Assembly (NCBI GenBank): GCA_029953675.1
Contig: JAMWBK010000005.1
Location: forward strand, 2,604,001 to 2,668,000
Reading direction: 5' to 3'
DNA length: 64,000 nucleotides
From: Rhodosorus marinus CCMP1338
Lineage: Eukaryota > Plantae > Rhodophyta
Below the pieces are notes generated by a model. It saw nothing but the letters and a program-made list of their open reading frames with translations, had not been told where the DNA came from and did no database searches. The position numbers were made by a program, and so were the translations under genes. The first letter of the stretch is position 1; each line of letters starts with the position of its first letter. Below, in pieces: positions 3,740 through 33,400 of the stretch.

Positions 3740-4590
3740 AGGCATAAGAGCTACAAGGTGAACTTAGAGAGGTTTATAGGCCATCCAGCTCAAACCTATT
3801 GCGTGCCACGGGGACCTGTTTACTCCAGCCCACATTGAGCTGGAGATTCAATAGAAGCCACTGTGGATCGGTTGAATTGACGGAAATTGGGTTGGAAAGA
3901 GCTACCAACATGGCAGAATAGAATTAGGTACTAGAATGAACACAAACAACCTCAGTTCAGTTCATGGCTTGTCCCACTCAAGGAGCCTCCATAAAGACTC
4001 GCTCAATGCCCCCTATCTACTCTACGTCTAAAACCGCGATATCTGAGATTCAACGCAAGCTATTCGAGGTTGATTACGTACCGAGTGGAGTAAGCTTGGG
4101 TTCGTGGAAAAGTATGGTCATAACAGAACAGAATGGAGAAGTAGAAGGGAGATGAATCAACCTCAGCTCATTGCCTGTCCCTCTTAAAAATCCGCCCAAC
4201 ACGATCTATTTAGTTTGGGGTCTAAACTGCGATCTCTAAGATACAATGCAGACCAGTCAGGATTGCCTAACGAGTGGAGTGTGTTTGGGGTTGAGAAGAC
4301 CCTTAACCAGGACAGAACAGAATAGAGAGGCAAAAGGGAGATGAATCAACCCCAGCGCATTCCCTGTCCCACTAAAACACCCACCCCAACGCCTTATATC
4401 TAGTCGAGGGTCTTAAAACCTCGATCTCTGAGATTCAATGCAACCAATTCAGGATAGCCCAACAAGTGGAGTGCAAATTTGGGGTCGAGAAGAACAAAAG
4501 CTATGACAGAACAGAAGCGAGAGGTAGGAGGGAGATGAACCTACCATCATCTCATCGCCTGTCCCACTCAAAGCCACCCAAAAAGGGTCG
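3740..4590. repeat. Diverged tandem array, ~190-200 bp unit, about 4 copies
   Basis: GGGAGATGAA..CC..TGTCCC starts at 4147, 4336 and 4530 (weaker copy near 3935). (G/A)AGAT(T/A)CAA occurs at 3843, 4045, 4238 and 4430. GAGTGGAGT and ACAGAACAGAA motifs recur at the same spacing. Confidence 0.85.
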
Positions 4591-6519: not shown

Positions 6520-6778
6520 ACCAGGACAACGCGTGGGGCGGGTGCAGCGGACCCATTCCCTGAAGCTTTTCCAGTGGGGCAAGTTTGTCCTATTCGAAAG
6601 GAGAGCATTGACGCTGCTGCTGGACTGAGAAGATCCACCTTGACGACTCCCATTTCAAAGATCGTTAGTACGTCGTAGCGAAAATTTTTCCATTCCGCAA
6701 TATGGAGGCGCTTAGTCGTAAACGGCAGATTTGTTGGGAATCATCATCTCACGATGCAGAAGAGGCGGACTCTGTCCC

Positions 6779-8174
6779 TCAAATTTTACTACTGTACAGT
6801 TCCAGGTCACCCCTAACGCGGTTGAGAAGAAACATATCGGAGTGGGTCAAGACGAGAAACCCCTCTTCTACATCCTCACGAAACCCAACGGCCAGGAGGT
6901 AGTCGAGCCCGCCGTCAGCAGCGATGACTCTCTTCTGAAAGGCTGCGTTTTCCAGTCTGATTTTTCGAAACTTGACGTCTCTAGGCTGGTTGATTATATT
7001 AGTAATATACTTGCCCATGGTTCCGTAGCAAGTCTTCCGGACATCTGCGGGATTACCATCCAGCTTCACGACCGCGGCCTGTATGCGATTCATGGAACGA
7101 AGTTTGGCTTATGAGCAGATGTGAAGAGACTTTTTTCGCCTGAATCGTTAGAGCGTGGGCGCTTGGTATCACTCACGCTCATCTCTTTGAGGGCCTTTTC
7201 CATGTCAATCGTATCGTCCTGTCCAGATGCCTCCCGCATCGCTTTCTCTTCCGCTTGCTTCTTCTTCAGCAAGTCCGTTTCCACTTTCTTCCGCGCGGCC
7301 GCCTCCTCGCTACGCTTTTCGAGCTCCTGTTCAGTAGGCGAATGGGACAAGGAGGTCAGCTTCTCGAAGTCGTCAGATTGAAAACGGGGAGGATTCCACT
7401 CACATTCGCCTTCTCTACACCGAATCGTCGAATTCGATCCTCTCGCAAAAGCTGACGAAGTCTCTCCCGCTCTCTTGCCTCATCCTCCTTGTCTTTCCTC
7501 CGTAGATCGATCGCTCTTTGTCGCTCCTGCTCCTCCACCACTTTGCGCGTCTCCGCCATCTGCTTACCCCTCTGAATCCTACGAAAATGTGTGAGCCAAT
7601 TCACAGTTTTAGCCTGTAAACTGCTATCGGATTAGAGGCAATCAGTCTTCGTTTCGCGCTGGTGTGTACCTCTCCTTTTCCCTAGTTTTCTCGGCAACCT
7701 TCTCGTTCTCCGCCTGAACCCTCCGATTCTCTGCGATCCGTTGCTTCAGTTCTTCGGCCTTGGCGGCCTTCTCCTCAGGAGTTAATTCCTTCTTCGACTC
7801 GGCAACGGCATCGGCAGGCAACGGATCATTTACGTCGGGCTCCTGATCATGTTCACCGATCCATGTTATAGCGGCATCCAGCGTTGAACCCCCATAGAAC
7901 AGACCTCTATCGCAAAAGGGACAGGGCACCAAATAAAAGCATCAAGAAACAGAGTTAGATTGACGGGACTCGGGCTGCGACTAAACAGGGAGATTAATCA
8001 GCCAAACCTCATGGCCCGGTTCCTCGGAAAACCCATCTCGATCATCTCCGCCAGAAGAGCCTCGTCAACATGAGGAGGCAGCTTAACACCTCCATCAACA
8101 GGAGACGACTCCACCGCAGCTTTAACAGACTCCGAGCCTCCATCTTCAACTTTCACCGGCTCTTTATCCTCCAT
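6779..8174 (-). CDS. UBA + coiled-coil + PUB(PUG) domain protein (p97/CDC48 cofactor-like), multi-exon
   Basis: UBA: LLAEMIEMGFPRNRAMR/GLFYGGSTLDAAITWIGEH. Charged coiled coil follows. PUB: YITNIINQPRDVKFRKIRLENAAFQKRV..GGLDYLLAVGF. The first ATG is at 8174; an upstream exon is not excluded. Confidence 0.8.
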
Positions 8175-9787
8175 TCTCACCAGCACCGGTCCACTCCCAC
8201 AACAACCAAAAAAACAGGAAAATTCCAGTTCTAATACAACAAAATCGGGCTAAAAATTCCTAATAGCTAAAGAAGGATGCAGCTAACTACCCCGTGAGGT
8301 AAACGCATTCCTTATCTACCCTATCGATCCTACCGCACATGGTCGTCAACGTGCATAACTCGACAAGGCGTCGGACATCAAGAACAATCCGTTGACAACA
8401 CCCTCTAGGAGATATTAAATGATTGAATATAAATCAATTTAAACGTAATTGATTGCTTTTGATTGAAAATATCTTCACGAGGGTTTTTGGTAGGAGATGG
8501 ACGCCCAGATGAGTTGGTTGATGCCTATGACGGGATGGAAGTTACTGACACGGCCCAGAGCGCCAGGGTGAGGCTTGAAATCTGAAAGTGAATGGTCTAT
8601 ATGGTGGAGAGATTGGATGCCAAGGTGATGGCGATATCTATTGGGAGGTAAAGATATCTAGAGGAAAAAATAGGACGGCATTATGCTAAGTCTTTTGTAG
8701 ACTTGGTACTACTTGTAGGGATCGTCTCCGGACCATCTGAAGTTGCTCTGAGAGATGGATGGGGGTTTTTTTTTTTTTCATGTCGATTTGGGTGCTTTCT
8801 GCTGCTGATGCTGTTGAGGAGGGTTTTGTAGATTCTTCTTGTCTCTCTTGGTCGTGTTGTTTGCACGCGCAAAAACTGGACAAGATCCGAATGTCCGACG
8901 GGTGGTACACGTACGTAGGATCTCCAAACTAGCAACTAGTAGCACTGCATGTGGAAACCCTCCTCATGAACAACTGCGTTCACAGCCAAGGCCGATAGGA
9001 TCCTCCATCGTGCACTTCCAATTAGAGACGATCCAAGCCCGAGGGCTTCCCGGTCAGCAGTGAACGAATCTATGGACAGACTCAGCAGGTCAATTTCGAC
9101 ACGTGCAGATAAACAATTCGCTCAATATTTATCTATACGAAAATATCTACGAAGCTCTTTTGCAACGGACTATTTTAAACCAAAATACATATCCACCCAT
9201 GACGCACACAATCTTCTTCTAAGATTCATTGGTTTAACTGGATATCTTATAACTATTATAATTACGGGGATGAGACGTAGAAAAAAGTTACTGACAGCAG
9301 GATCAGGCCCTTCTGTACTGATGACGATTCCAGAAAACTGTAGAACCCTTAGAGCCTATACCTTTTACGTTAATATAATTTCAAAATACAAATAAATTAC
9401 TATATATACAATATTATAGCGTAAACGATCACTCGGAGTTGCACAGTAGTTGCGACCGCTTTCCCCCCTTCCTCGTGCTGATTCCTGAAAATACAATTCG
9501 GCCGTAGGCGCCTAAAAATTTCAACTAGAAGATATTTCCTTTATTTGACTATTTATTTAGTTTTAATCAGAAACTTAATAAGAAGTCAAATATGATTAAA
9601 TAATTTTGTGTTTTGTGGCAGTGAATGATTGGATTTTGGCAGGTGATGAAAACTGTTGTTTTTAGGATTGGAAAAGGCGGCTTTTGAAGAGATGTCTTTT
9701 GTAAAGGTCTTTGGTTGGGGATGATGGCTCAGCTATAAGAAGGGTAGACCACTTGGGAAGGATTGCTTGACCTCGGCTAAGGGTGCG

Positions 9788-10608
9788 ATGAAAGGAGTGA
9801 GAGCAAGTTTTACGAGACTGATATTGATACTGGTTAGCATATTTTTGGCGTTGAAGACGATGGAATTTTTGTCGAAGATGTTGGGGAAGAAGAGTGCGAT
9901 GGTTGAGGAGAAGGACGCTCTGGCTGGGAGAGGGACGAATTTGGCAGTTTCTGGCTCGCACGCGATTTTTAAGACCAAATTGGATCAGGAATTCAAGGGA
10001 ATGGAAATGCTACAGGTTGGTATGGGGTGTTTCTGGGGAGCAGAGAAGAAGTTCTGGACTGTGGATGGCGTCGTTTCTACAGCGGTCGGGTACTCTGGGG
10101 GCTATACCCCGAATCCAAGTTACGAGGAGGTTTGCTCAGGAATGACTGGACATAGTGAGGTTGTGAGGATAGTTTTTGACCCTACCAAGACTTCGGTTTC
10201 TTCTCTTTTGAAAGTGGTAAGTTGAAATCTCTCGCGACGAGCCGATATGTTCCTGTTCAGCTCTCGCTAACTTGCTTTCCCTGCCTTTCTTTCCGACAGT
10301 TTTGGGAAAGTCATAATCCCACTCAGGGCAACCGTCAGGGAAACGACGTAGGCTCTCAGTACAGGTCTGCAATTTACTACTACTCAGAAGAGCAGAAGGA
10401 GCAGGCCGTTGCATCCAAGAAAATGTACCAGGAGAGACTTACTGCAAAGGACTACGGCAAGATCACGACCGAAATTCTTCCATCGAAGACGTTCTACTTT
10501 GCTGAGGACTACCATCAGCAGTATCTCAAGAAAAATCCGCGTGGATACTGCGGACTAGGAGGTACCGGAGTCTCCTGCCCTGTCTCCTTCGGCGTTTCAG
10601 CTGAATAA
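9788..10608 (+). CDS. msrA: Peptide methionine sulfoxide reductase A with N-terminal hydrophobic extension; 2 exons (intron 10217-10299)
   Basis: GCFWG active site, [55 protein letters not shown]. The intron has GTAAGT, a GCTAAC branch point and a CAG end. Confidence 0.95.
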
Positions 10609-11361
10609 GTGCTGTCTGATTACTAGTAAATCCAAATATCTAACTATTGAATAGAGATATGCCAAGCCTCATCTATGAAGTCCGTTCAGAGAATGGTGAT
10701 GAGGTCAATCGTTAGCTAGGAAACAGTGTGGAAACAGCACCCTACCATAGACGAGGACGGCTTGGGCTCCGTCAGCCTGTAATACCGTTGAATGCTTCAC
10801 TAGGGAGCTCCCTATTGGAGCCCTTAAAGAGAAAATAAGAGTATATCGATGCGCTATGAAGCCCCCGATGGGTTCTGTGGATACGCTGCGTGGAGACCTT
10901 TCGCTCTCATGCTTATCCAATGGACGTGCATGCGTTGCCGAAGAGCCAGGCTCCGTTGTGGGACAAAGCTTTCCACACAGGGGGAACAAAACTACCCTCG
11001 CTGTATCCGCAGACTCTGTGACGCGACAGTCGGATCCTTTTGGTGTCACTGGGGTTCGATGACAAACTGATTCCGATTGCCATAAAACCCTTCGGACTGG
11101 CCAGATGACACAAGATTTCCTGCGAGAAGGCTGTGATCACATGCTCACCAAGCAGTACGAGGTGCAAACAACGTGTGGGGCTCAACTAAACAGAACACTT
11201 TGCGCAGGGAACGCAGAGCTTGGTTAGGGCTTTGCGTGTGGATCAGTCGGACCAGCCACTGATTCCTTGTTTTTCTTCCTTTTAGTAGCTGGAGACCCCG
11301 GGTTGTGGGGTTAAACCCAAACATTTTCCCTAGGTTGTGATAGAATTAGTCTTGCGCTGCC

Positions 11362-11944: not shown

Positions 11945-12934
11945 TTACTCGTTCTTCTCTTCCTGAATATTTTGAGCGAACTCGCTGCAAGAGTATGCCA
12001 CGTTTCCACACAATGCCAATGTCAAACCAGCAAGAAGTGTGGTTCCTCCGGGAAACCCGCCGAGGTAGCTCTGTGGCCACACGATCGTTGCAAGAGACAA
12101 CACCCACGTGAACGCCACCATAGAAACGCAGAGTGTGAACCACTTTCGAGTCTGCGCCACAACGCATCCGAATACACCAGCGAGAAGCTGGAAAACACCA
12201 GCGGTAATCGTCAATTCCGGGTAGACGATCAGCATCGGCTCTTCAACGACAGGCGGGTCGTATGGACCTGGTCCCATGTATGCTCGTACAACGGAACCTC
12301 CAATGATAAAATACAGGCCGCCCAGCGTCAGGTTTATTGCCCACAACAGCAGCCTTTTCTTCGAGTATCCAGATCCTTGCGATTTCCCATCGACTTGATG
12401 TTTCCGGACAACGTTTCCAATCATGAACTGCCCGCCTTGCAGCGCGAAACACCATGAAATACCAGACAAAAGGGCAAAAACCCTGACGCAATCGTACTGT
12501 GGCAAAGTTAAATTATATGCTGGAGGTACTTGACGATCGTTCACGAGATCGTTGATAGGGGCCGCAAGAACCCATACTGTGAACACAAACCATCCCAGAA
12601 CGAACGCCAAAGCCATCCAGGCTGTTGTGATCATCTTGTTCCCAGCTTTCACCAGTAGGAGCGCACCGCCGACCAATACTCCCGCCAGACCAAACAAGAT
12701 CTCACCACAAGCAGACACAAGCAGCAGACTCTGACTGAAAGGTCCTGGCTGGGGATCAGCAAACCGGAAAGCCCTCATCGCGCCCTCGTTCATGACGAGA
12801 TAAGACCACAGAACAAACAAACCAACAGCAGTCAAAAACCCTCTTGAAAGCCCCTTGTTCGACTCCTTCTGAGCCTCAACATCAAGCTCCGCATCCATTG
12901 AGCTCAGCTCAACCTTCTCACTATCCACCGCCAT
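11945..12934 (-). CDS. Uncharacterised 8-TM membrane protein, paralogue A (329 aa, intronless)
   Basis: Long ORF with about 8 hydrophobic segments; motifs YLVMNEGA, GEILFGLAG, LGWFVFTVWVLA, WCFALQGGQF, YPxL are shared with three neighbours. The first ATG is at 12934. Confidence 0.9.
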   Translation of the reverse strand: MAVDSEKVELSSMDAELDVEAQKESNKGLSRGFLTAVGLFVLWSYLVMNEGAMRAFRFADPQPGPFSQSLLLVSACGEILFGLAGVLVGGALLLVKAGNKMITTAWMALAFVLGWFVFTVWVLAAPINDLVNDRQVPPAYNLTLPQYDCVRVFALLSGISWCFALQGGQFMIGNVVRKHQVDGKSQGSGYSKKRLLLWAINLTLGGLYFIIGGSVVRAYMGPGPYDPPVVEEPMLIVYPELTITAGVFQLLAGVFGCVVAQTRKWFTLCVSMVAFTWVLSLATIVWPQSYLGGFPGGTTLLAGLTLALCGNVAYSCSEFAQNIQEEKNE

Positions 12935-13061
12935 CACTCCCTTCTCCCCTTCCCCCCACCCCGTCCCCCCACCAAAAAAACCAGCACACACCACCACAAG
13001 CCCAAAGTCTCCAATTAACTACCAACACCCCATGCACCCCCTCACCTTCCCCTTCCCACAG

Positions 13062-13068
13062 TATATAT
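13062..13068 (-). promoter_or_regulatory. TATA-like box, paralogue A
   Basis: ATATATA about 130 nt upstream of the ATG; equivalent boxes lie upstream of the other three paralogues. Confidence 0.45.
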
Positions 13069-16000
13069 CAACCTCAAATATCCATCCCTATCCATCATCC
13101 ACAGACCAAAAAGTCAGCAAATCCAATCTTATAACTCCCAGCAAAATCCCCTCCCTCCCCCCCCCCACATCCTAAAAATGCTTAAGGCAGAATGGTCCAC
13201 AACCTGATCAAAACAAAATTTATTAATAATGATTAATATGTAGTCCAATAGATTCTCTTGGAGAACATTATTGTATGCGGACCGGGGGGGGGAGAATTAT
13301 ATTTCCACTTTTAGGTTTGAAAGAATTTTGCGTATTTCCACCCCCCTCAATATTTTGTAGTATATAATAATTTCAAAAAGGCCGTCGGGGGGTGGGGGGG
13401 GTGGGGTGAGGGGAATTATCTGTTTAGTCCCGAGCCTCCGAAAAACGAATTCGCCCATTCTTATCCATTGCACGGAATCAACTATGTGTGCTGAGGATTA
13501 AAGTCCACACTGGGTAGAGGGCGGGATTGGAATAAAGTCCACCTTGGATAGGACGGGTTTTGTTGGTTGGTGCGGGGAAGCTAGTAATTGGCTAACTCAT
13601 GATTTTGTGAGCATTAATTGGATGAACTAGAAACAATTAATTTGTTTTTAAGTACTCTTATCGGAACTATGGTTAATTAATACGTATATTGAAAACATAT
13701 ACACCAATTGTAGTGACTTCTTAGTATTAAGGGAAAATGAATGGTGGGTCTACATACTAAGCCTCTGCTATTGGCCATAATAGTGTTCCATATGTTTCTA
13801 TTAGTATTTTTTATTAGGTATTTCAATATTTCCTACATGTATCGACATCGCCTCAACCCAAGTTGGAACTTGTCCAACACGGCATGCTAGAACAATTGCC
13901 GTTTATTCTAGCAAGAATCCGATTCTGAAAATTGGAGTCCTCCAATACAGCTCTTGTTTGCCACGTCCAGTCCAAGAAACGCCCCAAAAAATTCTCGGGG
14001 CCCCCACCGATTCCTCGAGCGAGCCTCGTGAAATCAGGCTCGTTTTACTCGCTCCACAATAAAAACCCGGGATAACCATTAAAAATTCCTATCCGACCAG
14101 CCTAATATCGAAAAACCCACCCCCGCTTAAATCCCGTGTCTCCGTCCGCAATGGTCTACGTTCGGATTTCAATATCTGTCCAGGAAAGTGAATCTTTGTA
14201 CTGAATTGTGATAAAAATTAGATCATACATCAGGCCATGTGAAAACTTGATTGATCGTTGATTAGGGGGATCTTTTTGTTCGTTGGACAAGACGAGCTGC
14301 TTTGGTACCTTTGGAGTCCTTAGGCGTTACTTTACAGGGGAAGGAGGAGGTTGAAAGCCGCCCTTTTGGAATTTTTTTTACAACGTACAACGTAAGAGAT
14401 TCCTTAGGAACTGCAAGGGTGAGAGCTTTAACGCGGTTTCAAGATGAACGAGTCTCAAGCAGACGGTTTTTTACCCTTCAGAGGCTAAGACCCCCCAATG
14501 AGGTACGCTGGGAAGGGGGCAGAGGGCGGGCCTCCATAACTAAAGCAGGCTTACAGCGCAGGAGAGTGAATTTAGAACAAGTCTAAGTCAGGATGGCCAC
14601 GGTAACCTGCCGCGCAACCCCTACGACCACCAGCGCGAGAGAGATGTTTTAGGCAAAAGAATCGGAGCTTCGGCCATCTTCACTACTGGGATTTTGGTTG
14701 CGGGGGTCCGCCAACTGCCCATTTGGCTGGTACCCAGCTTTGAAGTAGAAGCCAGAACGATGATAGTTTTCCTTTTACGGTAAAGAAAAAACCTTGCTTT
14801 GGTCTATCTGCCTATACGCTATACTTGTACCGTCTAGGTACAACTATAAGTGTCATCATCTACTCTCGATCTCATCGACTTTTTTAAATGAATTTACAAC
14901 ACTGGCATCCTTTTTTATGATTCTATGGAATGAGAATATATATGACACTTAAATGCTTTTTGCTCATTTTTTTTTGGAATGGCCGTCGTCAGTACACTTT
15001 CAATTTCCGGGCACGGGGCCAAATCAAATAAATTGTTAGTTTTATCATGATCCGTAAATTCTTCTGGACAAATCTGCGCTTTGAGTGGGAATAAGATTGA
15101 TTGAATTCCAATAAAAATAATCCACTACAGCTGAAGTCTGTCCCGAACTTCAACTAAACAATTAAGGATTTGGAGCTTTTTTTGATGATTTTAACTATCG
15201 GGGAGCAGTGTTTTTCGAATTTTATATTTTTTAGCCGCGAAAGACATGGTCCTTGGTATGAAGTCAATTTGCTAATTGTTTTGATAAATTGTTTAGAACA
15301 GAGTTGTCTCGCACATGTACATGTCCATCGCCATCCCCCCAGGCCTTTTTCAAAAAGAATTATTGAGGGGGGAGTTGCTTTCGCACTTCAAATCGTCTGG
15401 GGACAGATTTTCTACCGGGTTCCAAAAACACTTATCGAAACAAACAGAAAACGATTACCTCGTTGATGAGTTTCTTTGATTCTTTATCCGAAATTGGAAA
15501 TCTGTAGGCCGGTATGGAGAGTTCATTTCTGGTTTCCCCGTCGTTCGCACGCCTTCGGCACGCGGGGTTCAGCCCTTGTGGCTTCTCTGCGCTGCCGGGC
15601 TTCGCGCTTCGGAGTAAACGTGGTTGCTCCTTAGCCTTCCTAGAGCGCGGCTGGTCCGGGACCAACCCCATCAAACATTGGGAAGAATCGGCCTCAAAAC
15701 GGCTCGACATCATCATGTGTTTTCGGACTAATGAAACGACCTACCCTAGCACAGCTTGAAGAGGTATATATTGCAATCCTTTAGGTCCCTCGTTTTTGAT
15801 GTACTCGGCATTAGAACGCGAGGCGTATTGCCTCAGGGTATTGACATCTGCTGCTTTCCAATACAAGAACGACCAGAGTGACTTGCGTCCCCCACAAAGG
15901 GATAAACTCTTGAGAGCTTCTCATCTGAGAAACTGTGAATAGAGAGAGCTACTAACAGTAACCCTCTCTGGAGTTTTGTCTGTAGCCTTGAAAATGACGC

Positions 16001-17418
16001 GAGCAGGAATTCAGGTTGTAGTTTGTGCTCGATGTACTAACTGAACATAAGCGAGGGGAATCAAGAACAAAGAAAGACCGGGTGTGGTCAGAAGTTCCTC
16101 ATGACAGGGTTCGACCAAGTGAAATTCTTAACAGCGAAACCGAGATTACAAGGCTGCTGGGGGAGCTGTTCTCGCCAGATATCAGGAACGTCCATTCCCA
16201 CAACGGTTTGAGAAACAAGTTTCCTACTCGGGCACTCCAGGACGTCGGAGCTCTCTCTGGTTCAAACCCACTTTTCACATCGAGAAACCCAAATCAACTA
16301 CTTCCTCGTTTCCGATTCCTACTAAATTACTCCCGAAAAGATAAAAACAGTTTACTCAAAAACCCGCATTTAGATGTATCATATCAAATCAGTTTATAGC
16401 AAAAGAGAAAATCAGTGTCGTAGAAAACATTTTCTACGCGTAAAAATTCCACCTTTCAATAATTATTGTGTGTACGTTGAATAATTAAAGACTTTTTGAT
16501 GCCATCGGCAATCTTTTTGCTCTAGCTCAATAATCTGATGGAAAGTTATTGATTATTCAATGTACAGAATTGAGCGATGAGAAAAGGCAACGAAAAACAA
16601 GTTAAATTCTAAGACTTGATTTAGCTTCTTTTTCCAATATATTCTTGTTTGTTTCACAAAACAAGAACTCTTCTCGCGTTGAAAAGCAAAACTGCTGATT
16701 CTGGACTGCTTTGCTCGTCTGGGAGATTATTATCGGAAGTGGCGAACCGCAGGAGTTTCGCTCGGTTCCTGCATTCTCAACTGCTCCGAGGAGGATGCTC
16801 TGTACAAAAAACATGCAGAATGGACATCCTGAGAGTTTTTAGAGCAGAGCTCCTCCTAGCAGCCTTGTATTCACGGTTTCTCAGATGGAAACTTTACGCG
16901 GTTGCGAGCCGGGTCATCAGGAAAGTAAACCACACCCGAACTTCCTTTGTTCTGGTGAGCTACCGACGCCTGTACCCTCAGACACACCCTCGCACGCTTG
17001 CTCAGTTAGTGAATCGAGCACAAGCTACTAAATGTCTGCCTGCTCACTGCGTTTTCAGGTCTATCCACGTACCGCAGCTACAGTTAAGGCCTGTCGGAAA
17101 AGGTCAGTCGAAGACAACGATCGATCTGAGAGCGTTCTCATGCGTGCAAACTGGATCAGCAGGGTAGCTATGGACTATCGGAAAACGTGATTTAATCTCT
17201 CTTGCGTATACAACTCAACATCCAAATAAATTCAAATCCCCAGGTCCTCCGACGGATACTAGCAGCCTATTGATACAGGTTTTGGGTTCGTTCTCTTCGA
17301 TAGCTCTGTTGTACTCAGCAACTTCGTCAGCAACATTTGCCAACCCTACGAGCGCAGTTCAGCCGGAAAACTGGTTCCTGCAGCAGCTTCGGCAAAGGGT
17401 CGTCTCTGGGGTACATTA

Positions 17419-18405
17419 CTAAGCTTGGAGCTCCTCGTCGAGATCCATTTTGTATTCATGAATAGAGTACGCAACATTCGAGAACGTCACAGCTGAAAGT
17501 CCAGCAAGCAGCGTCGTTCCAACCGCGGCTCCCGCAATGAACGTCTGAGGCCACACAGCACTCGCCAACGTACCCATCCACAGGAATCCAAGCGCCGCAC
17601 CGCACGCTGCAAACCATTCCTTCTTGTACGCAACCACAATGCCCATCAATCCACCGATCAGTTGGAATACTCCAGCCGTAATCGTCAATCCAGGGTAGAT
17701 AATCACCATCGGCTCCGATACCACTGGAGCATCGTACGGTCCGGGTCCAACGTTCGCTCTGATGATCGATCCGCCAATGAGGAAGAAAAGTCCGCTCAGG
17801 GCTAGGTTGCTCGACCACATGGTTAGACGGATCTTCGAGTATCCAACCCCCTTGGACTTTCCTGTCGCCTGCATAGCGCGGATGACATTCCCCACCATGA
17901 ACTGACCTCCCTGAAGCGCAAAGCACCACGTGATACCGGCCAAAAGTCCGTACGTCCTGAAAGCATCGTACTGCGAAAGCGTTAACGGAAGACCCTCCGG
18001 TACCTCTCGAATGTTGGCGATGTTGAAGATCGGCTGTGCCAGTACCCACACGGTAAAGACAAACCAACCCAGAACAAATGCCATAATCAACCATCCAGTC
18101 GTAATCATCTTGCTTCCATATCTGAAAAGTGCGAGCGCGGCTGCGAGAATGACCCCGGCGAGGCCAAAGAGGATCTCACCGCAAGCGGCCACCAGCAACA
18201 GTGTCTGGTTGAATGCCGCGGGCTCGGGGGTACCAACGAGAGTCGACCTGACGGCACCCTCGTTCATAACGAGGTATGACACAAAGGCAAATACTCCTGC
18301 GGTGACTAGGAGTCTTGCATTGCTCCCCAAGTTGCCCTGCTTCTGTTCTTCAATATCGACATCGACGTCGATCTCCGCCTCTCTCGTCTGTTCTTCCAAA
18401 CTCAT
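17419..18405 (-). CDS. Uncharacterised 8-TM membrane protein, paralogue B (328 aa, intronless)
   Basis: Same family motifs; ATG at 18405 (MSLEEQ...). Confidence 0.9.
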   Translation of the reverse strand: MSLEEQTREAEIDVDVDIEEQKQGNLGSNARLLVTAGVFAFVSYLVMNEGAVRSTLVGTPEPAAFNQTLLLVAACGEILFGLAGVILAAALALFRYGSKMITTGWLIMAFVLGWFVFTVWVLAQPIFNIANIREVPEGLPLTLSQYDAFRTYGLLAGITWCFALQGGQFMVGNVIRAMQATGKSKGVGYSKIRLTMWSSNLALSGLFFLIGGSIIRANVGPGPYDAPVVSEPMVIIYPGLTITAGVFQLIGGLMGIVVAYKKEWFAACGAALGFLWMGTLASAVWPQTFIAGAAVGTTLLAGLSAVTFSNVAYSIHEYKMDLDEELQA

Positions 18406-18512
18406 CCTTCTCGTCGTTGCAAAATTGGCCTCTACCCTTCCGTCTCTGTGTCTGTCTGTATGACTGAGTGTCCCAGCCATCACCCACGTCCCAGGATTGG
18501 AAAGGCAGTTCG

Positions 18513-18520
18513 TTTTATAA
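18513..18520 (-). promoter_or_regulatory. TATA-like box, paralogue B
   Basis: TTATAAAA about 110 nt upstream of the ATG. Confidence 0.5.
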
Positions 18521-20575
18521 GCAAGGGTTCGCCTCTCCTTCAACGTACTTGTATCCCGAGATCAGTATCCGGGAGAAAAGCTAGTTGCCTCGGGGTTGAT
18601 CCCGGGTCTACTGCACGCACTTGATGCGCGTACTATGTGATTGCCACCAACAACAATTGAGGTGAATTGGATCGCAATTCGAGTACAGAATTCCGGAGCC
18701 CTGAAAACTCCACAAATGGCTCATGTACAGTGAACGGGCAATAAAATAAAGAAATTCAGCCCCGAAAGTCGGCCGCGGTGCGGGATCGCTTTTTTACACG
18801 AAAACAGCTGACTAACGCCGTATCCATTAACTGACATCTTGCAGGTGTGTACCATTTTGCTGAGAGTTTTGTGGGCGTCCAGGAGTTGCGAAAGTCCTCT
18901 TCCGACCCCAGAATCTAAGTGCTCTTCTATCGCTCTTCCTTCGCCCGTCCAGAAACTAGGATACGTAGCAGGTACTCTGAGGCAAAAGATACATACATTC
19001 TGTACTTGCCGAGACCCTCAAAAACCCTGTTCACCACATGTGGCTGTGCAGCCACACAGAAAACGAGAAAAAGGGTGGAAAAACGTACTGGAGAATGTAT
19101 TCTGTTCCTTACTAATTCTATTCACTAAATTATCTATTAATAGATTTACTTATGATACAACAGATATATACAGGATGTAGTCCCGGAAAGGTATTTTATA
19201 TTTGTACAATGATTAACTTCATAATCGACACCGGATAGAAAAAATCTGATTCGACCGTTGACGTCTCATTAGCCTTCTGGGTTGGCTTAATAGATGTAGA
19301 ATTGAAATACAATCTAAATAAACTTTCTACTCCAAAACCTGTGCTCAACCTCGATGAGCGAAAGCATATCTGTCCTATTAAAAACATATAAGATTTGAGT
19401 TATTTAGAACACGTGTATTTTTTTCATTCGACTGATTATCCCTGAATTTGGAAATTTGTGATCGCGAAGGAGAAACTGTTCGTATACATATATGTATTTT
19501 TATATTCTATAAATATTGCAATTTTTGCGTTTGCGAATTAATCATTGAAAAAAGCCACTCGAAAAAGCAGTGCAGAATAGGACAAAACATTACAAAAAAA
19601 ATTATATATATTGGACCTGGGGCCTGACGTTTACCATTAATTCTTCAACTACTGCTGTTGCAAGCTGAGTATTCTAAGTTTTGGAAATGGGCGTGACCGT
19701 TTCTACCCTGTCGGTGTGGACGAGGAAGGAGTTACGTTTAGGGAAATGAATTCCCCATCCTGCTGCCCCGGTAATATAAGGGGAGAACATTTCCCATTTT
19801 CCCACGCTACGTAAAGGACTTCTTTCCAATCCCCCAAGCTTCGGCATTGATGCGTGCTCCCACCAGAAGCAAATCCGATTCTCAAAAATGGGAATCATGC
19901 ATGTTGATGACTCTGCTTGACAGCTGTCACATGATCTCGAGCACCTTTACGACTGATGGGACTTTCTCGATATCCCGTGTCACACTGAGGACATTGTCAT
20001 CCACCAAGGACACAACTTTTCTCTCCAAAACATAGAAAGTCCAGCATGACTGTGGACGTCCTCAACCTCTCTCGCCATGATTGGAGGCGAATCAAGCACA
20101 GTCTTCGTACAAGCGTGCCTTATCCGGAGAATCTCGCCAGACCAAACGTCGTTATGCACGCTCGTCTCTGAGAGGGTCTGGAGACGCCCACCAGCGGCAA
20201 ACTTCCGCTATTGGGGCTTCCAGTTTGCTTCAGATTGGAATAAGTGTAAACTTATGCAAACAAAACAGCAGATGACTTAAAAGGCCCGTATTGCTAGGGC
20301 ATTGGGAACTGCGTCAATAAAATCTGTCCCTTTAGTCAACCGAGCAACATTAGACAGTACCAACCTGCGGTGGATAAACCGGGATTTCTTGAGGGCGTGA
20401 TTAGTGGAAATCGATCGTAACAATGACACCTCTGTGCTAAGATTCGGGACGGTGTCAGATCGGGACTTCAGCTCCAGTGACTTTTTGTTTTAGTAAAGTT
20501 TGATACAAGTTTCTTCGAAATTAGATCTTCTAGTGTGATCATTACAGTTGTACATTAAGAACTTGGGACACTTGT

Positions 20576-21562
20576 CTAAGCTTGGAGCTCCTCGTCGAGA
20601 TCCATTTTGTATTCATGAATAGAGTACGCAACATTCGAGAACGTCACAGCTGAAAGTCCAGCAAGCAGCGTCGTTCCAACCGCGGCTCCCGCAATGAACG
20701 TCTGAGGCCACACAGCACTCGCCAACGTACCCATCCACAGGAATCCAAGCGCCGCACCGCACGCTGCAAACCATTCCTTCTTGTACGCAACCACAATGCC
20801 CATCAATCCACCGATCAGTTGGAATACTCCAGCCGTAATCGTCAATCCAGGGTAGATAATCACCATCGGCTCCGATACCACTGGAGCATCGTACGGTCCG
20901 GGTCCAACGTTCGCTCTGATGATCGATCCGCCAATGAGGAAGAAAAGTCCGCTCAGGGCTAGGTTGCTCGACCACATGGTCAGACGGATCTTCGAGTATC
21001 CAACCCCCTTGGACTTTCCTGTCGCCTGCATAGCGCGGATGACATTCCCCACCATGAACTGACCTCCCTGAAGCGCAAAGCACCACGTGATACCGGCCAA
21101 AAGTCCGTACGTCCTGAAAGCATCGTACTGCGAAAGCGTTAACGGAAGACCCTCCGGTACCTCTCGAATGTTGGCGATGTTGAAGATCGGCTGTGCCAGT
21201 ACCCACACGGTAAAGACAAACCAACCCAGAACAAATGCCATAATCAACCATCCAGTCGTAATCATCTTGCTTCCATATCTGAAAAGTGCGAGCGCGGCTG
21301 CGAGAATGACCCCGGCGAGGCCAAAGAGGATCTCACCGCAAGCGGCCACCAGCAACAGTGTCTGGTTGAATGCCGCGGGCTCGGGGGTACCAACGAGAGT
21401 CGACCTGACGGCACCCTCGTTCATAACGAGGTATGACACAAAGGCAAATACTCCTGCGGTGACTAGGAGTCTTGCATTGCTCCCCAAGTTGCCCTGCTTC
21501 TGTTCTTCAATATCGACATCGACGTCGATCTCCGCCTCTCTCGTCTGTTCTTCCAAACTCAT
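20576..21562 (-). CDS. Uncharacterised 8-TM membrane protein, paralogue C (protein identical to B)
   Basis: The CDS matches B except at one synonymous site (17824 T vs 20981 C on the + strand). Confidence 0.9.
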   Translation of the reverse strand: MSLEEQTREAEIDVDVDIEEQKQGNLGSNARLLVTAGVFAFVSYLVMNEGAVRSTLVGTPEPAAFNQTLLLVAACGEILFGLAGVILAAALALFRYGSKMITTGWLIMAFVLGWFVFTVWVLAQPIFNIANIREVPEGLPLTLSQYDAFRTYGLLAGITWCFALQGGQFMVGNVIRAMQATGKSKGVGYSKIRLTMWSSNLALSGLFFLIGGSIIRANVGPGPYDAPVVSEPMVIIYPGLTITAGVFQLIGGLMGIVVAYKKEWFAACGAALGFLWMGTLASAVWPQTFIAGAAVGTTLLAGLSAVTFSNVAYSIHEYKMDLDEELQA

Positions 21563-21691
21563 CCTTCTCGTCGTTGCAAATTTATCAATCTTTAAATCGT
21601 TCTTCAAACTCTGGAGTCCTCGCTTTCAGTGTGTTGTGTGCTTGGTAATAGTCCTTGCTATCAGCCATTGATCCTGATCGAGGACGATCCA

Positions 21692-21701
21692 CCTTATATA
21701 C
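21692..21701 (-). promoter_or_regulatory. TATA-like box, paralogue C
   Basis: GTATATAAGG about 135 nt upstream of the ATG. Confidence 0.55.
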
Positions 21702-22631
21702 ACCACGAACCTACCACGAACCAACATTCTGATCCAGGTATGTAGAAAACACAAACCTCTTCTCAAGGTTGAAAAACTCTCACCAGGTCCCTCCCTGTCA
21801 CTTGCCCCTCCACATCAGCTCCTCGTATTCACTCTCAACCGATTTTCAGCGATCCACCGTGCTCAGGTTGATGCGCGATCCAAATTAGAAAAGCGAATAC
21901 TTTTTCGCAGCTGTCAGCACTAAAAAATCCCGAAAAAATACATGGTCGGAAAACTTTGAAAACCCATAATACACGCTGGCGTCACTAATTAACCGTAGAG
22001 TTGGGACAGATGCTATTCGGGTCATGTGTTTTTGTTTAAATTGTAGATAGCTAACTGACGTCCTCCCTAAAAAGGTATGTTTTCTATACCTACTCAAGCG
22101 GACGAAAATCAACGTGAAAGCATTGAAAACACATGTTCTGGTTCCATTCCTACTCTCAGAAAATCACCAGCGTCTCAGTTTCGCCTTTTGCGCGTATTGC
22201 GAAATGGGCAAACCTTTAGACAGTCCAGCTTATGCCAGAAACTCAACTATTCAATATAAGAGCCACTGAATAAATTGTATAAAAATAAAAATAGATTGAT
22301 CAAACAATGATTGAGCGTATATTGACACGTGGTAGTACTTGATTAGATGGGGGTGCCCTTTTCGATTGATACGATCTCATTTAATTGTATTCATTTGAAA
22401 TATGTTGTATTACAAAGTATTATTGAGGGGCGGTGGTGTGCTATATTTTGAATAAAACAGTTCCCGTAGAAATCAATTTTTATTATATATATATTTGCTG
22501 TCGATAAAAAGCTGGTAGACGATACTTTTGACGTACGAAAATATTTTGAATTTATGGTACACGTTGTCCAATAGAAACGAGCTGATTGATGAAGTCTATT
22601 TAATTCCTCAGCATTCAATTTTCTTTTTGTC

Positions 22632-23201
22632 TCAGTCATGTGAATAAGTAGCAGCGGTCGTGTACCGTGGTACACGAGCGGGGTAGAAAACGGAGGTGCC
22701 GTTGGCGGGACGCATTCTGGGTTCAGATTCTAAAAGAGGCTTGTACGGCATGTGATAAGGACGTTCTTCACCTACAGACAAGTTTCGATTCGGTGGAGCA
22801 CCGGATGAAAGGGCCATAGCCATCAGGGTCACCGAATTTTTGGATACGGATTGTACTGCATTTCTTGGACGTGATAGGAGCATCATCTATTGGCGCAAGG
22901 TAATTTGTTTCTTCGTCTCCCCAGAAATGTATTCCTTCCGCGAAGCGGGCCAAGGGTTTGGCGGTGTCACCGAGGAATTGTTCAAGAAGTCCGGCGCAGA
23001 GTCTAATCGGGCCATCCAATCCAAACTGTTCTTGTCCACAACTAAAAACCGGTACACGTTCCTGGCCCTACTACCTACACGACTTCGTGCTGATTCTCTT
23101 TCAGTCTCTCGTCTAGTGCAGCTTCCAAACCAAATCGCCAAGGGGGACGGTAGATCAGAAGACTCATAGGCAGTTGTCTGTGTACTATGATCGTCAGACA
23201 T
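22632..23201 (-). pseudogene. Possible interrupted ORF (104 + 84 codons, same frame, one TAG), unidentified
   Basis: ORFs 22887-23201 and 22632-22886 abut in frame across ..CAA TAG ATG ATG... The segment is GC-richer than the surrounding AT-rich spacer. No recognisable domain. Confidence 0.25.
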
Positions 23202-24196
23202 TTCCTATTCACACATTCCCTATAGTTTCATAGCCTTGCCCCTACGCTTTTGACATCAACCTAACCAACTCAGCGGGACCCGGATGTCCCTGGCCACCTA
23301 AACGACGGCATCCACAGTTTCCTGACTAATTTCTTTTGAAATTGTAGGAAATCTTTTGTCCCCATAAACAATATTTCTTTGAATTTTAGGCTGGGCAAAG
23401 TTTTGCCTTGTTAAAAATATCTCTCCCCCAAAAAGGGCGCTTCGTCATTGGCATCGATGCAGACAACGGGACAGGTGGGGGTTACGTTAGTCTGGCAACG
23501 GATTTCTTTTCTTTTTTCTACCGCCTCTATCTTTCCCACCTGAACTATTGCCATAGAACCTGAGATACATTTGCGCTGAAGTAGCTTTCCCGACGTGGTC
23601 GGTAGAGATAGTTGCCCCATTTCAACAGCTTCGACGAGCTTCTGATGCAGCAGGGTCGTTCTCTCTCCATCTCTTCGTGATATGCAAGGATCTAATTCAA
23701 TTTCCCTTGGTGTGCACGTCTTAGCTTTATTTAGCAGACGATCCGTGGTTGACAATCAAGTTCGAGGTGGTTTGGAAAGACTTGCCTCTGAATTTAGTTT
23801 CTTGTCCCCGTAGCGCTATTGGGATCCCATTGTCCAAATTCCGTGACTACCTACGGCAGCCGAACAAAAAACACTCTTAAGGTGATATGCAAGGAAAAGA
23901 AAATCCTGTCTACGGGTCACCCACGGGGATGACCCTGACGTGTGGGTCCTACACAGTGAGCAAGGACACTGTTGGTACAACGATCCACACCCGGAAGAAG
24001 CGAATTCTATGTAACAAGCGGGAAACATGTCATTCTCGTGATCTTTGAAAAGAACGCGTGGAATCCGTGGGCTTTGAGGTAGCGTGCGTACGGCAGATTT
24101 TAGGAGTTGGGTCTAGAAATGTACCAATCGATCCTTCATTATTTATTTTAGAGATCAGCATTCGGAACACAGCTTCTTCTCAAGGCAAGGAGAAAT

Positions 24197-25162
24197 TCAG
24201 CTCTCCGCCAGGAGTTCCTGCTCGTATTCGCTGGCAGAATATGCAACGTTGCCATGGATCATGGTGCACAGGCCTGCAAGGAGCGTTGTCGCTGGAGCGA
24301 TACCTCCCAAGAACGCTGGAGTCCACACGATCGTGGCGAGACTGAAGAGGTACGAGAATGCCACGAACACAGTAACGGTCTTGAACATTCTCCTCATTAT
24401 CGCCGCTGAAACGGCAAAGGTTCCGAACAGGAATTGAATAATTCCAGCCGCAATGGTGAGACCCGGGTACACGATGAATATCGGCGGGAACGCTTGAACA
24501 GGCTCAAGTGGACCTGGTCCGTAAGCAACGCTTGCTACAGAGCCAGCAATCACAAACACAATTCCACTCAGGGAAATGTTAAGCGACCACATGATCAATC
24601 TGATCTGAGCGTATTTTTCTCCCCTCGTCTTTCCTTGATCCTGATGACCTCGAATGACATTTCCAACCATGAACTGGCCCCCTTGCAGAGCGAAGCACCA
24701 GAAAATACCTCCGAAAAGGCTCATCGTTCTCAGTAGGTCGAACTGCTGAATCGTCAGGGGTTCTGGTGCCGTCCGAACGTTCACGAGGTTCCAGATGGGG
24801 AACGCGAGTACCCATACGCTGAACACAAACCATCCGAGAACAAAGGCCAGCCCCATCCAGCTTAGAGTCACGAACTTATTGCCGAAACGGAATAGAAGCA
24901 GTGCTATTCCCATAAGAAAGCCAGCGAGCCCAAAGAGGACTTCACCGGAGGAGGCCACGAGCCTCAGAGTCTCGGAGAAGGCTGCCGGTTCTGGCGTCGC
25001 GACTTGGGTCGAACGAATTGCTCCTTCGTTCATCACGAGGTAGGAGTAAAGAGTGAAGACAGAAATGGCAACCAGGAACCTTCTGGTCCAAATCGTGCCC
25101 CGCTGCACTTTCTGGTCTTCAATGTCATCGATGATGTCGGTTTCTCTCCCAGCGACGTCCAT
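24197..25162 (-). CDS. Uncharacterised 8-TM membrane protein, paralogue D (321 aa, intronless)
   Basis: YLVMNEGAIR, GEVLFGLAG, LGWFVFSVWVLA, FWCFALQGGQFMVGNVIR, YPGL motifs. Confidence 0.9.
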   Translation of the reverse strand: MDVAGRETDIIDDIEDQKVQRGTIWTRRFLVAISVFTLYSYLVMNEGAIRSTQVATPEPAAFSETLRLVASSGEVLFGLAGFLMGIALLLFRFGNKFVTLSWMGLAFVLGWFVFSVWVLAFPIWNLVNVRTAPEPLTIQQFDLLRTMSLFGGIFWCFALQGGQFMVGNVIRGHQDQGKTRGEKYAQIRLIMWSLNISLSGIVFVIAGSVASVAYGPGPLEPVQAFPPIFIVYPGLTIAAGIIQFLFGTFAVSAAIMRRMFKTVTVFVAFSYLFSLATIVWTPAFLGGIAPATTLLAGLCTMIHGNVAYSASEYEQELLAES

Positions 25163-30412: not shown

Positions 30413-33400
30413 CTAGTTGTTTTGTTTTGGTAGTGCTCGCCGCTCAAGTTCATTCAATGCCCTGCTCGGAGCCCAGTATATGCAAAAGGCGAAGAATCGC
30501 AGGGCTGCACCTGCCGTGGTGGATGTTTCGTTTGGTTCTGCTGAGAATAAGTACCTCAGCGTACCCTCTTTGCAACTCACTAGTTTCCTCCGCGAACCAC
30601 TTTTCAGAATACTCCGGACAAAACTTGGATTGGAGTTTGTCAACGGCGTCCTGTACACTGCCAACGATAAAGAACGATGTCGATCCATCTTGCTGCTCCT
30701 AGCAAGGGGAAGGGACGCACGAAAATGTTGGTACTTTTAGCACTTCTCTCTGCATCTGGAAAAAAAAAACCGATGGTGCAAATCGCGCTATACTTACAGC
30801 CAGGTGCTGTGACACTTTCTCGAAGTGGCTTCCCATCAACATTTCACCAATATAGACACCTGTTCTAGCGTGAACGTTTGTCACCTTCCGCATTTGTCTA
30901 TCAATCATCCCCACCGGTACAATACTCTCCAGAGCGAAGCGTTTATCTCTCGAAGACGCATTATTCAGGTCCCCTTTCAGACGAAAAAGAACGCTCCGCT
31001 TACCAGGGATGCTACCGGACAGCACCGCCTTGACCAACTCCGCATCTACCTCCAGGTCGCCAGCGAACACTACGTTCTGATAGGCCGAATCGGAAGCCAA
31101 ACACAATTCCATACCCGTACGGCAGGAGAGTTTCTTCACCGAGAAGAAAATGTTTTTGTTGCTCATCTCAATAGAACTCTCCGCAAGATCAAACACGCTG
31201 CCTGGAGTTTCGGGTCGACCATGGCTATCAAGCACCTGCTCGTCAAAATCCCAGCTTATGAACAGCGGCTTGGTGTACTTTACAGAGAGTGCCAGCACAC
31301 TACTCAGCGCCAACATTCGCTCCTCAGCAGAGCCACAGAGCTCCGCAAAAATAAAGCCCCCGTTCTTCGTCCAGTCATCAAAACTTCCCAAGCGATCGAT
31401 TGATGAGAGCAACTCTCCCGGATGCACCTCGAGTTCACCTTGAGGGGCAAGACATGCGACGCATACTAGGATTCAGTTCCAAAACGTTTGAGGAGTTGCG
31501 ATATGAAAAATTTTGGTATTCCGAAGCGATGGATACTTTCGCACGATCTACAATGGCTCATGAAGTTAAGCGACGCGATACGATGTTATGGGCTTACCTA
31601 TAACATCCCACGGAACGCTCAATGCGTCGTGCAAAACCCTGCCGTTGGCAAGTCGTTGGGACTCCGCTAGCGTAGACGCAGAGACAGTAGCGGAAAGATC
31701 CTGCGTCCTTGTTGTGAGCTTGACAATCGCCGAACTCGCAGAAGAGTCTTCAATTGCAGCATCCATAATGGACTGTTGATTCGCCCAGGCCTTTGCCCAA
31801 TTCTCTTGGTCCTTGAGTAAAACAGCGTTCAACTTCCAACAAAGGGATGTCCGGTACACATCGGTCAGATTCGGGCCAGTTGTCCGAGGACGCAAATCGG
31901 AGGTAACTTACTTGTGTAGAATACATTCGTTTAGGAACATTCGCATTTCCCGAAGATTGCACATGACGGAGGGTTTCAATGTCCAGTTCCTTAGCCTTCA
32001 GCCCAGCTATATTCTCGAGCCTCATGATGAGCTCAGTGTCCTCGTAGCCGTATGAAGCGATTCGTTCATCGTAGGCGTGAACTGACACAATGCGTTCTCG
32101 CGGAACAAATAGGACGCCTGTCAAGTGCTGCTCGTTTTCAGTCCTGGCCCGCTCGTATGGGATTCGTCCATATGCCCCTTCCTCCGCTGACAGCGTGTTG
32201 ACCTTGAAGAAATCCTTGCTAACGATGGTGTCACAATCGACCTTCAAGACCATGTCCCCAGACGCAAGCCGGAATCCCACATTATACGCTCTCGACAAGA
32301 TCCATTGCGGCTGGTCAATCACGTTCACCAGAAGCACTCTCTGGTCTCTGACGGAATCAACGAACCTCTTTATGGACATCCTCGAGGACCAGTCCACAAG
32401 AACTATCTCATCATCGGGGCCAATCGCGTTCAACCAACTGGGTAGAGACTTGGTCAGAAGTTCCAGTTTGTCTTTACATGCTGTGGTCCCGAAAACCCCA
32501 AGAGAGGAAGTTCAAAAGAGACTGTCTCAGAAAGGCTGATTTCTTCAGGAGTCGAAAGTTTTTCCTCATGCGACCAACCAAGATCCTCTAATGGCTCGAT
32601 GATAGTCATACGGGGGCCCTGTTCATACGATTCACTAGGCTTACCTGCGACGATCGAATACCTCGGAAGTCGATCAGAGCTTCTGACCTTGGAAAGCTCG
32701 TAGTTGCGAAGGCCCTTAAGCGCGGGGATGTTAACGATTGAGTAGCTTCTATAGTTAGGTTGCAGCTGTACAAGAGCCTCTGAAGTCAGTGTGGAGCGAT
32801 TCACAACGTCATATGAGCCGAATCGGACAATTGCTTTCGATTTTTTCATGTTCCATTCCATTCCAGACAGCACCAGGAAGGGCACAAGAAGAAGTAAAAC
32901 AACCAAGTACTTCTCATGTGATCGTTTCCCACCGTTTAGCGTCTTGCGAACGGACGCAAACGTGATTCGCGAACCACGCTTCCCATAATCCATCATTGGG
33001 TTCGACTCCCCAGAGCTTTCTCCAGGTTTTCCTTCCTCCTTTTCCAAATCAAATTCTACACCAGACCTCGTCCTCTGGAAGGGTCTGTACACTGGAGCTG
33101 CTCGCGGTGATCTCGAATACGAACTCGTTTTCGATACCTCCTCATATCCAGATGATTCAGCGGTGCCGCCCCCCGCCGGTGGAACTCCTGGACCATTGGA
33201 TCCCTGATGTCCTGCGAGCGGAGAATAACGGCCTTTCGGTGATCCCATACTCGCGCAGGGACCACCTCCCCCGCCGCCCTTACCACTCAACTCGGAAAAC
33301 GAGCTTCTCCTCTGCAGAGGTGCGCCCTGGCTGCTGTCAAGCCTCGGTTGTCTAGGCGTGCTCCCCCGCCGTTCAATCGTTTTTCCGTGCAAAGCATTAT

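Follow-up and report, generated by a model that had tools for sequence, protein, structure and literature searches.

A four-gene cluster in the red alga Rhodosorus marinus belongs to an unnamed eukaryotic family of eight-helix membrane proteins with a probably tetraspanin-like C-terminal module

Introduction

The bacterial protein LetA, for which a structure became available in 2026, is a pseudodimer of eight transmembrane helices (TMs) made of two consecutive tetraspanin-like domains of four TMs each, and the work on it demonstrated that transporters can be built from tandem tetraspanin-like bundles (PMC13017536). LetA moves lipid, contains a water-filled polar network in one of its domains and carries extracytoplasmic beta-strands (PMC13017536). 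The same study reported uncharacterised eukaryotic LetA-like proteins in protists, seen as AlphaFold models without zinc ribbons, and placed VKOR in the tetraspanin superfamily, listing it as structurally related to tetraspanin-like bundles; no eukaryotic member of that superfamily is known to transport (PMC13017536). The present account deals with four clustered genes, copies A to D, in a stretch of 64,000 nucleotides from the red alga Rhodosorus marinus CCMP1338 (contig JAMWBK010000005.1, positions 2,604,001 to 2,668,000; the whole of this stretch is called the window). An earlier note on this DNA had picked them out as encoding an unassignable membrane protein and as a candidate new transporter or channel family.

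The comparisons described below give good support to the view that the four genes are paralogues within an unnamed and ancient family of eukaryotic membrane proteins, around 330 amino acids long, that has been retained in a patchy fashion. Each protein appears to be built from two four-helix modules, of which the first carries a set of near-invariant polar residues and the second is a probable, very remote relative of the tetraspanins. What is at hand is a compact and well-conserved membrane-protein family that is unnamed and lacks both a Pfam model and a structural neighbour.

The four genes and their family

Copies A (11945..12934), B (17419..18405), C (20576..21562) and D (24197..25162) all lie on the minus strand as intronless coding sequences of 329, 328, 328 and 321 amino acids, respectively (stop codons included in the coordinates), with B and C encoding the same protein. 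Exactly four open reading frames (ORFs) thus answer to the earlier description of co-oriented, uninterrupted paralogues of 321-329 amino acids. A six-frame scan of the whole window with the family hidden Markov model (HMM) matched the four copies at E = 1e-87 to 1e-176 and gave no fifth copy or pseudogene anywhere in the 64 kb, nothing else scoring better than E = 0.2. The start codons were set by full-length collinearity with homologues. Copy A is 91.8 % identical to the transcript-derived R. marinus protein P0003 (A0A7S2ZES9) and copy D is 92.2 % identical to P0004 (A0A7S3A453), both alignments being gapless and collinear from end to end, as befits orthologues. Because the frames are uninterrupted, and A and D are collinear with proteins derived from transcripts, the coding sequences are read as intronless. 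The possibility, raised in the earlier note, that no copy is expressed does not apply, as orthologues of two of the paralogue lineages (A and D) are transcribed in R. marinus transcriptomes.

The breadth of the family came to light with an exhaustive HMMER search using a clade profile, which recovered 138 cluster representatives (50 % identity clustering) at E<=1e-3 and 68 at E<=1e-10, mostly of 300-400 amino acids and matched end to end. A word-indexed search gave six close relatives only, and a protein search with the non-red-algal alignment gave just 2 matches, low-complexity tails having probably swamped the word index. Of the 144 sequences that were compared, one BLAST-linked network joins all except 10. 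The nearest relatives are all from the Stylonematophyceae (Rhodosorus, Purpureofilum), which make up one subgroup; a second comes from other red algae (Chondrus, Agarophyton, Hildenbrandia and Porphyra), a third unites Chara braunii with the discosean amoebae Stenamoeba, Vexillifera and Mayorella of the Amoebozoa, a fourth is that of Abeoforma (Ichthyosporea), and a fifth (G2) consists of metagenomic sequences with long acidic C-terminal tails. The metagenomic contigs examined look eukaryotic. The family is not specific to the Rhodosorus genome, being spread over several eukaryotic supergroups, and red algae, a charophyte, amoebae and an organism closely related to animals have kept it for more than a billion years. 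Every named member is annotated as 'uncharacterised' or 'hypothetical', none has a precomputed Pfam domain, and a literature search by the accessions of the named homologues found nothing.

Local duplication recurs in this family, because Agarophyton chilense also has two paralogues lying 3 kb apart on contig CBFFQO010038422.1, divergently transcribed (5982-6992 on the minus strand and 10001-11026 on the plus strand) and 47 % identical.

In Pfam, the cut-off was reached by none of the three distinct window proteins and none of 58 family members, and matches to Neurensin, TANGO6_N and DUF1689 were dismissed as sub-threshold noise. Searches of the PDB sequences with single sequences and with clade profiles gave nothing at E <= 0.001. 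The earlier statement that the proteins bear no MFS, DMT, aquaporin, bestrophin or rhodopsin signature agrees with these results and with a structural search by Foldseek, all of them negative.

Two modules of four helices

The count of about eight hydrophobic helices, first made by eye from the translations, is matched by eight hydropathy peaks per protein and by eight long helices in an AlphaFold2 model (residues 28-57, 67-94, 99-131, 143-181, 189-219, 238-261, 265-290 and 294-327). This model was built from a 38-sequence alignment and has a predicted local distance difference test score (pLDDT) of 87 and a predicted template modelling score of 0.83; an earlier run on a 7-sequence alignment reached a pLDDT of 66, and the Foldseek results obtained with it were too unreliable to keep. 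Both termini are predicted to be cytosolic, since the two termini and the even-numbered loops (2, 4 and 6) together hold 13 lysine and arginine residues, and the odd-numbered loops (1, 3, 5 and 7) hold 4. The N-terminus is an acidic segment of 27 residues that reads as neither a signal peptide nor a transit peptide. All of the loops are short (up to about 28 residues), including the one of about 8-19 residues between the modules. The outer TM5-TM6 loop (residues 216-238) holds a small beta-hairpin at 228-235 in the model, the inner TM6-TM7 turn is the sequence YKKEW, and the outer TM7-TM8 loop has only 3-9 residues (PQTFIAGAA in copy B) and no cysteine.

In copy B, the N-terminal module of TM1-TM4 covers residues 28-181 (17863..18324, minus strand) and the C-terminal module of TM5-TM8 covers residues 189-327 (17425..17841, minus strand). 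When profiles of the two halves were compared with hhalign they aligned in register, TM1-3 with TM5-7 and TM2 with TM6, at P = 1e-3. The score of 21.0 was reached by 0 of 60 segment-wise shuffles, which gave a null of 13.0 +/- 2.3; these shuffles keep the composition of each TM and loop segment in place. The alignment suggests two tandem modules of the same orientation, with the homology of the halves weakly indicated. A 4+4 repeat had been hinted at in the earlier note, and that proposal has gained an in-register alignment beyond all 60 shuffles, although the signal at this P value is a weak one.

A polar set in the N-terminal module

The conserved residues of the N-terminal module (copy B numbering, all encoded within 17863..18324 on the minus strand) are E49-G50-x-x-R53 in TM1, E77-x3-G81-x2-G84 in TM2 and C161, Q165 and Q168 in TM4. 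Across the red-algal, Chara/Amoebozoa and Ichthyosporea groups, E49, G50, R53, E77, G81/G84 and Q168 are near-invariant and Q165 is largely conserved. In the C-terminal half R193, G205, G212, P232, P238, G245 and Q287 are conserved in all groups, and most of the positions conserved throughout the family are glycine or proline packing residues. All of the polar residues that had been named from the window alone are present (E49 in NEGA, E77 in GEI/VLFG, Q165/Q168 in LQGGQF, N200 and N310), but two of them proved to be clade-restricted: N200 in TM5 is limited to red algae, where it is invariant, and N310 in TM8 is limited, like N173, to the Stylonematophyceae.

When these residues are placed on the model helices and their hydrophobic cores, TM1 has E49 and R53 at its outer end, TM2 has E77 some nine residues in from the outside (its outer-to-middle part), and TM4 has Q165 and Q168 in its middle-to-inner part. 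The spacing of i, i+4 and i+7 in E77-G81-G84 and again in C161-Q165-Q168 means that the conserved positions share one helix face, and these faces may meet in the core of the bundle as a polar line across the bilayer.

The function placed first for the family, tentatively and at rather less than an even chance, is that of an intramembrane conduction or transport device. It comes first because the proteins have essentially no extramembrane mass and because two glutamates, an arginine and two glutamines are kept buried in one bundle across supergroups. With so little outside the membrane, the protein should act inside the bilayer. R53/E49, E77 and Q165/Q168 would line the core of the N-terminal module from outside to inside and could form a hydrated path for protons or small cations, and this path may be the permeation route itself, or else an energy-coupling or gating element. 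The nearest precedent for such a mechanism would be LetA, with its polar network in one domain and its movement of lipid. The near-invariant E49, R53, E77 and Q168 are precise targets for mutagenesis.

The same residues, taken together with C161, might instead be the active site of an intramembrane enzyme that works on a lipid or hydrophobic substrate. Membrane enzymes made of a four-helix bundle exist, VKOR of the tetraspanin superfamily among them (PMC13017536), and the acid/base cluster with C161 is conserved and buried in the N-terminal module of a protein devoid of soluble domains. However, recognised catalytic motifs such as CXXC or a His box are absent from the family, no Pfam enzyme family was matched, and C161 is not invariant outside the red algae, all of which leaves an enzyme quite improbable.

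The divergent members of the metagenomic subgroup G2 (P0104, P0109, P0137 and P0140, from loci L002/L003) have acidic, low-complexity C-terminal tails of 350-500 residues. A motif 'PAFLD-x-KMR' is conserved after their TM8, and the E/R/E/Q/Q set of the N-terminal module is lost.

A tetraspanin-like C-terminal module

A profile of 58 diverse family members found seven matches among the PDB sequences at E <= 10, and all of them were tetraspanins, beginning with CD9 (4.2e-5) and CD81 (5e-4), then CD53, TSPAN7, TSPAN15 and UPK1B. Residues 186-287 of copy B map to tetraspanin TM1-EC1-TM2-TM3, so that TM5-TM7 correspond to tetraspanin TM1-TM3. A separately built profile free of red-algal sequences gave five PDB matches, again all tetraspanins, and CD9 and CD81 stood at 1-2e-3. 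When the C-half profile was set against the CD9/CD81 segment, hhalign gave P = 6e-5 and a score of 28.2, against 11.7 +/- 2.5 (maximum 19.0) for 60 shuffles, a distance of about 6.6 standard deviations. LetA, used as an equally hydrophobic control for transmembrane composition bias, gave P >= 0.23, and the N-terminal half gave no signal against tetraspanins (P = 0.19). Several individual family members have sub-threshold matches to the Pfam Tetraspanin model (PF00335), the best at 20.1 bits against a gathering score of 32.1; the window's own four proteins have none.

The C-terminal module is, on these alignments, probably a very remote tetraspanin-type bundle, and there is good support for seeing in it the TM1-TM3 core of the tetraspanins, either remotely related or closely mimicked, without the EC2 ectodomain. 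The family was not filed as a tetraspanin, because it has no EC2/CCG domain and stays below the Pfam threshold. The word 'unassignable', as used in the earlier note, survives in the sense that no named family is matched at cut-off, and needs qualifying for the sub-threshold tetraspanin similarity of the C-terminal half. In that half the glycines are heptad-spaced, G205/G212 in TM5 and G245/G252 in TM6, and TM7 ends with a Q287 that is kept throughout the family. In tetraspanins themselves an Asn in TM1 and Glu/Gln in TM3/TM4 are conserved; the red-algal N200 aligns two residues off this Asn.

These results are also what might be seen if the proteins were non-transporting organisers or regulators of the membrane, comparable to tetraspanins, TARPs and claudins, with bundles that bind partners or a sterol or lipid, and with the conserved Glu, Gln and Arg serving helix-helix hydrogen bonding or the binding of lipid head groups. 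In CD81, N18 and E219 take part in cholesterol binding. Tetraspanins are the only remote similarity to be detected, the positions conserved family-wide are mostly of the Gly/Pro packing kind with heptad glycines in TM5 and TM6, tetraspanins typically form families of many paralogues, and the G2 subgroup does without the polar residues of the N-terminal module. No transporter is known among the eukaryotic members of the tetraspanin superfamily (PMC13017536). Set against this are the lack of an EC2 or other ectodomain, which tetraspanins, claudins and TARPs use for their partners and for which the TM7-TM8 loop of 3-9 residues leaves no counterpart, and a polar load heavier than that of tetraspanin helices, with two Glu, one Arg and two Gln near-invariant in a single bundle. 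On balance such an organiser is possible but doubtful. A scaffolding role would make the family a minimal relative of the tetraspanins that has no ectodomain.

The conduction or transport reading has its own difficulties, and a number of observations weigh against it and against the structural picture behind it. Tetraspanins keep conserved intramembrane polar residues and yet are not transporters. The G2 subgroup retains the motifs of the C-terminal module without the polar set of the N-terminal one, which means that this set is not indispensable to every member. The polar line was read from one-dimensional helix positions, from which a continuous path is extrapolated, and for every family member the functional role is inferred. 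Profiles made from red algae alone miss the tetraspanins among the PDB sequences. Foldseek searches with the pLDDT 87 model gave best E values of 0.086 (PDB) and 0.016 (BFVD), template modelling scores (TM-scores) were <= 0.33 for every full-length alignment, including those to G-protein-coupled receptors, the transmembrane domains of ABC proteins and ClC, and neither LetA (9n8w) nor tetraspanins were among the 50 matches listed. An unnamed viral protein (G8DGJ7) matched with a TM-score of 0.28.

If conduction or transport is nonetheless the function, the glycine-zippered, tetraspanin-like C-terminal module could supply a pocket for a lipid or hydrophobic ligand, or might serve oligomerisation and the contact with partners. 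Of the earlier proposal of a candidate new transporter or channel family, it is the absence of a name that has been substantiated; the family turned out to be widespread and to have a faint affinity to tetraspanins, and transport stays at the level of a hypothesis. A family that conducts ions or moves lipid would represent a new eukaryotic transport fold and link tetraspanins to ancestral transport.

Age and relationship of the copies

The copies in the window are far from recent. At the amino-acid level A and B are 55 % identical, and A and D, like B and D, 50 %. Synonymous divergence between the diverged copies is saturated (proportions of differing sites of 0.70-0.77 for synonymous and 0.29-0.36 for nonsynonymous positions), and dN/dS is around 0.2 for the A-D, B-D and C-D pairs, which are the pairs covered, dS not being computable for A-B and A-C. 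The split between A and D came before the split from the sequenced R. marinus strains, where the A and D orthologues are already separate. A, B/C and D appear from these values to be old duplicates under purifying selection. No 8-mer or promoter motif is shared in the 700 nt upstream of all four copies.

The relationship of B and C is of a different kind. The segment 17419..18423 of copy B (minus strand), a putative gene-conversion tract, is 99.9 % identical to 20576..21580 of copy C (minus strand), and the sole difference is one synonymous T/C site at position 17824. The identity begins 18 nt before the ATG and ends exactly at the stop codon, and on both sides it falls abruptly to around 25 %, the random level, with unrelated untranslated regions and promoters. 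A recent segmental duplication was rejected on account of the sharp ends at -18 and at the stop codon, and so was an assembly artefact or duplication, given the same bounds and the random-level flanks. Because the identity spans only the coding sequence between unrelated flanks, gene conversion confined to that sequence is the likely process that keeps B and C identical, and its limits may reflect the fact that the coding sequence is the only segment in which the two are still homologous. The other explanation of the identity would be selection that maintains a single protein in two regulatory settings. The pair is a tidy case of coding-sequence-limited conversion between differently regulated paralogues, if conversion it is.

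The cluster is accordingly best described, as far as its sequences tell, as three diverged protein lineages under independent promoters, one of the proteins being expressed from two unrelated regulatory contexts. It hardly resembles a simple dosage array, because the proteins are diverged and the regulatory contexts unrelated, and only B and C encode an identical protein. The term 'dosage-expanded', applied to the cluster when only its letters had been read, sits badly with copies that are 50-55 % identical, have saturated dS and a dN/dS of about 0.2, and share nothing in their promoters.

With it goes most of the original guess at a function, taken here as a recent dosage expansion of an inducible transporter for the uptake of inorganic carbon or nutrients, which now looks very improbable. 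The four tandem copies speak for such an expansion, as does a gene for phosphoenolpyruvate carboxylase directly downstream of one of the Agarophyton chilense paralogues, although the latter is anecdotal and gene order is weak evidence in eukaryotes. However, apart from the age of the copies and the promoters without a common motif, the N-termini are acidic and do not look like plastid transit sequences, and homologues with the same conserved residues are carried by amoebae and an ichthyosporean. Since these are heterotrophs, inorganic-carbon uptake is disfavoured as the core role of the family.

Other features of the window

The surroundings of the cluster were described in the earlier note as mostly spliced genes, and this fails for some of them. 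A bacterial-type topoisomerase IA of 1068 amino acids (Toprim and Topoisom_bac domains and three C-terminal repeats) is encoded by one uninterrupted ORF at 39600-42806 on the minus strand, and the adjoining WD40 gene at 38108-39133 on the plus strand is a single ORF of 341 amino acids. The ORFs between the four copies had no match in a Pfam scan. An ORF at 9767-10225 (plus strand) holds the start of a peptide methionine sulfoxide reductase domain and is adjoined in a different frame by another at 10222-10608 (plus strand), which suggests a short intron or a frameshift. Three successive ORFs at 30699-33473 on the minus strand are perhaps one spliced gene, and the middle one has glycosyltransferase family 2 and galactosyltransferase C-terminal domains.

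Two tandem repeats were also recorded. A minisatellite with a 10-bp unit (GAGGAGGTTT) occupies 58777-60146 in around 137 copies with a 98 % match; it explains why the GC skew of the 58-60 kb bin is so extreme (0.70), and it gives rise to spurious long ORFs of 548 and 510 amino acids, with a sub-threshold 'Extensin-like' Pfam match. The other, at 4123-4572, is a 189-bp repeat present in 2.3 copies with a 77 % match.

Comparison with known systems

MFS, DMT, aquaporin, bestrophin and rhodopsin proteins are likewise polytopic helical proteins with conserved intramembrane polar residues, and the 58 family members had no Pfam match to MFS, DMT, aquaporin/MIP, bestrophin, microbial rhodopsin or ZIP. 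Inverted repeats are typical of many carriers; in contrast, the modules of this family are, by their predicted topology, parallel duplicates.

The likeness to the tetraspanins (PF00335; CD9, 6K4J; CD81, 5TCX/7JIC) is confined to the C-terminal module. This module would have the same in-out-in-out topology with cytosolic termini, and its TM5, an outer loop of about 20 residues, TM6, a very short inner turn and TM7 align with tetraspanin TM1, EC1, TM2 and TM3; the first two helices have heptad-spaced glycines in both. Tetraspanins have four helices whereas the family proteins have eight, and their EC2, CCG motif and disulphide cysteines are not found in the family.

As for LetA/PqiA (E. coli YebS, PDB 9N8W; PF04403), membership of the family in this group was considered and is not supported, there being no zinc ribbons, no PqiA match and no profile similarity. 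LetA has a four-cysteine zinc-ribbon domain before each TM module, whereas the proteins described here have no CxxC pairs, and its GRWSMxDxF motif is not found in them. The Pfam PqiA model matched none of the 58 family members at E <= 0.1. An hhalign comparison of the family profile with an alignment of 80 LetA sequences (E. coli LetA and 79 orthologues) gave P = 0.5, with 0.59 and 0.23 for the halves; E. coli LetA alone showed no profile similarity either, and the 9N8W sequence was present in the PDB set that was searched. Pfam scans of the larger ORFs in the window found no MCE domain, the partner of LetA, but no search was aimed at such a partner, and a eukaryotic counterpart need not be linked.

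One further reading takes the resemblance to LetA at more than face value and makes the family a eukaryotic counterpart of LetA-type 'double tetraspanin-like' transporters, and hence a new eukaryotic class of transport proteins. Conduction of protons or cations by E49/R53/E77/Q165/Q168 would then power or gate the movement of a lipid or hydrophobic substrate by way of the C-terminal module. This is unlikely by present reckoning, but if true it would show directly that early eukaryotes already put tetraspanin-type bundles to use in transport. LetA remains the closest known architecture, and the resemblance is an architectural one. Both have eight TMs in two same-orientation halves of four; the extracytoplasmic beta-strands that follow the first module helix in LetA have a counterpart in the predicted hairpin at 228-235; and in both a conserved polar network occupies one module, the C-terminal one in LetA and the N-terminal one in this family.

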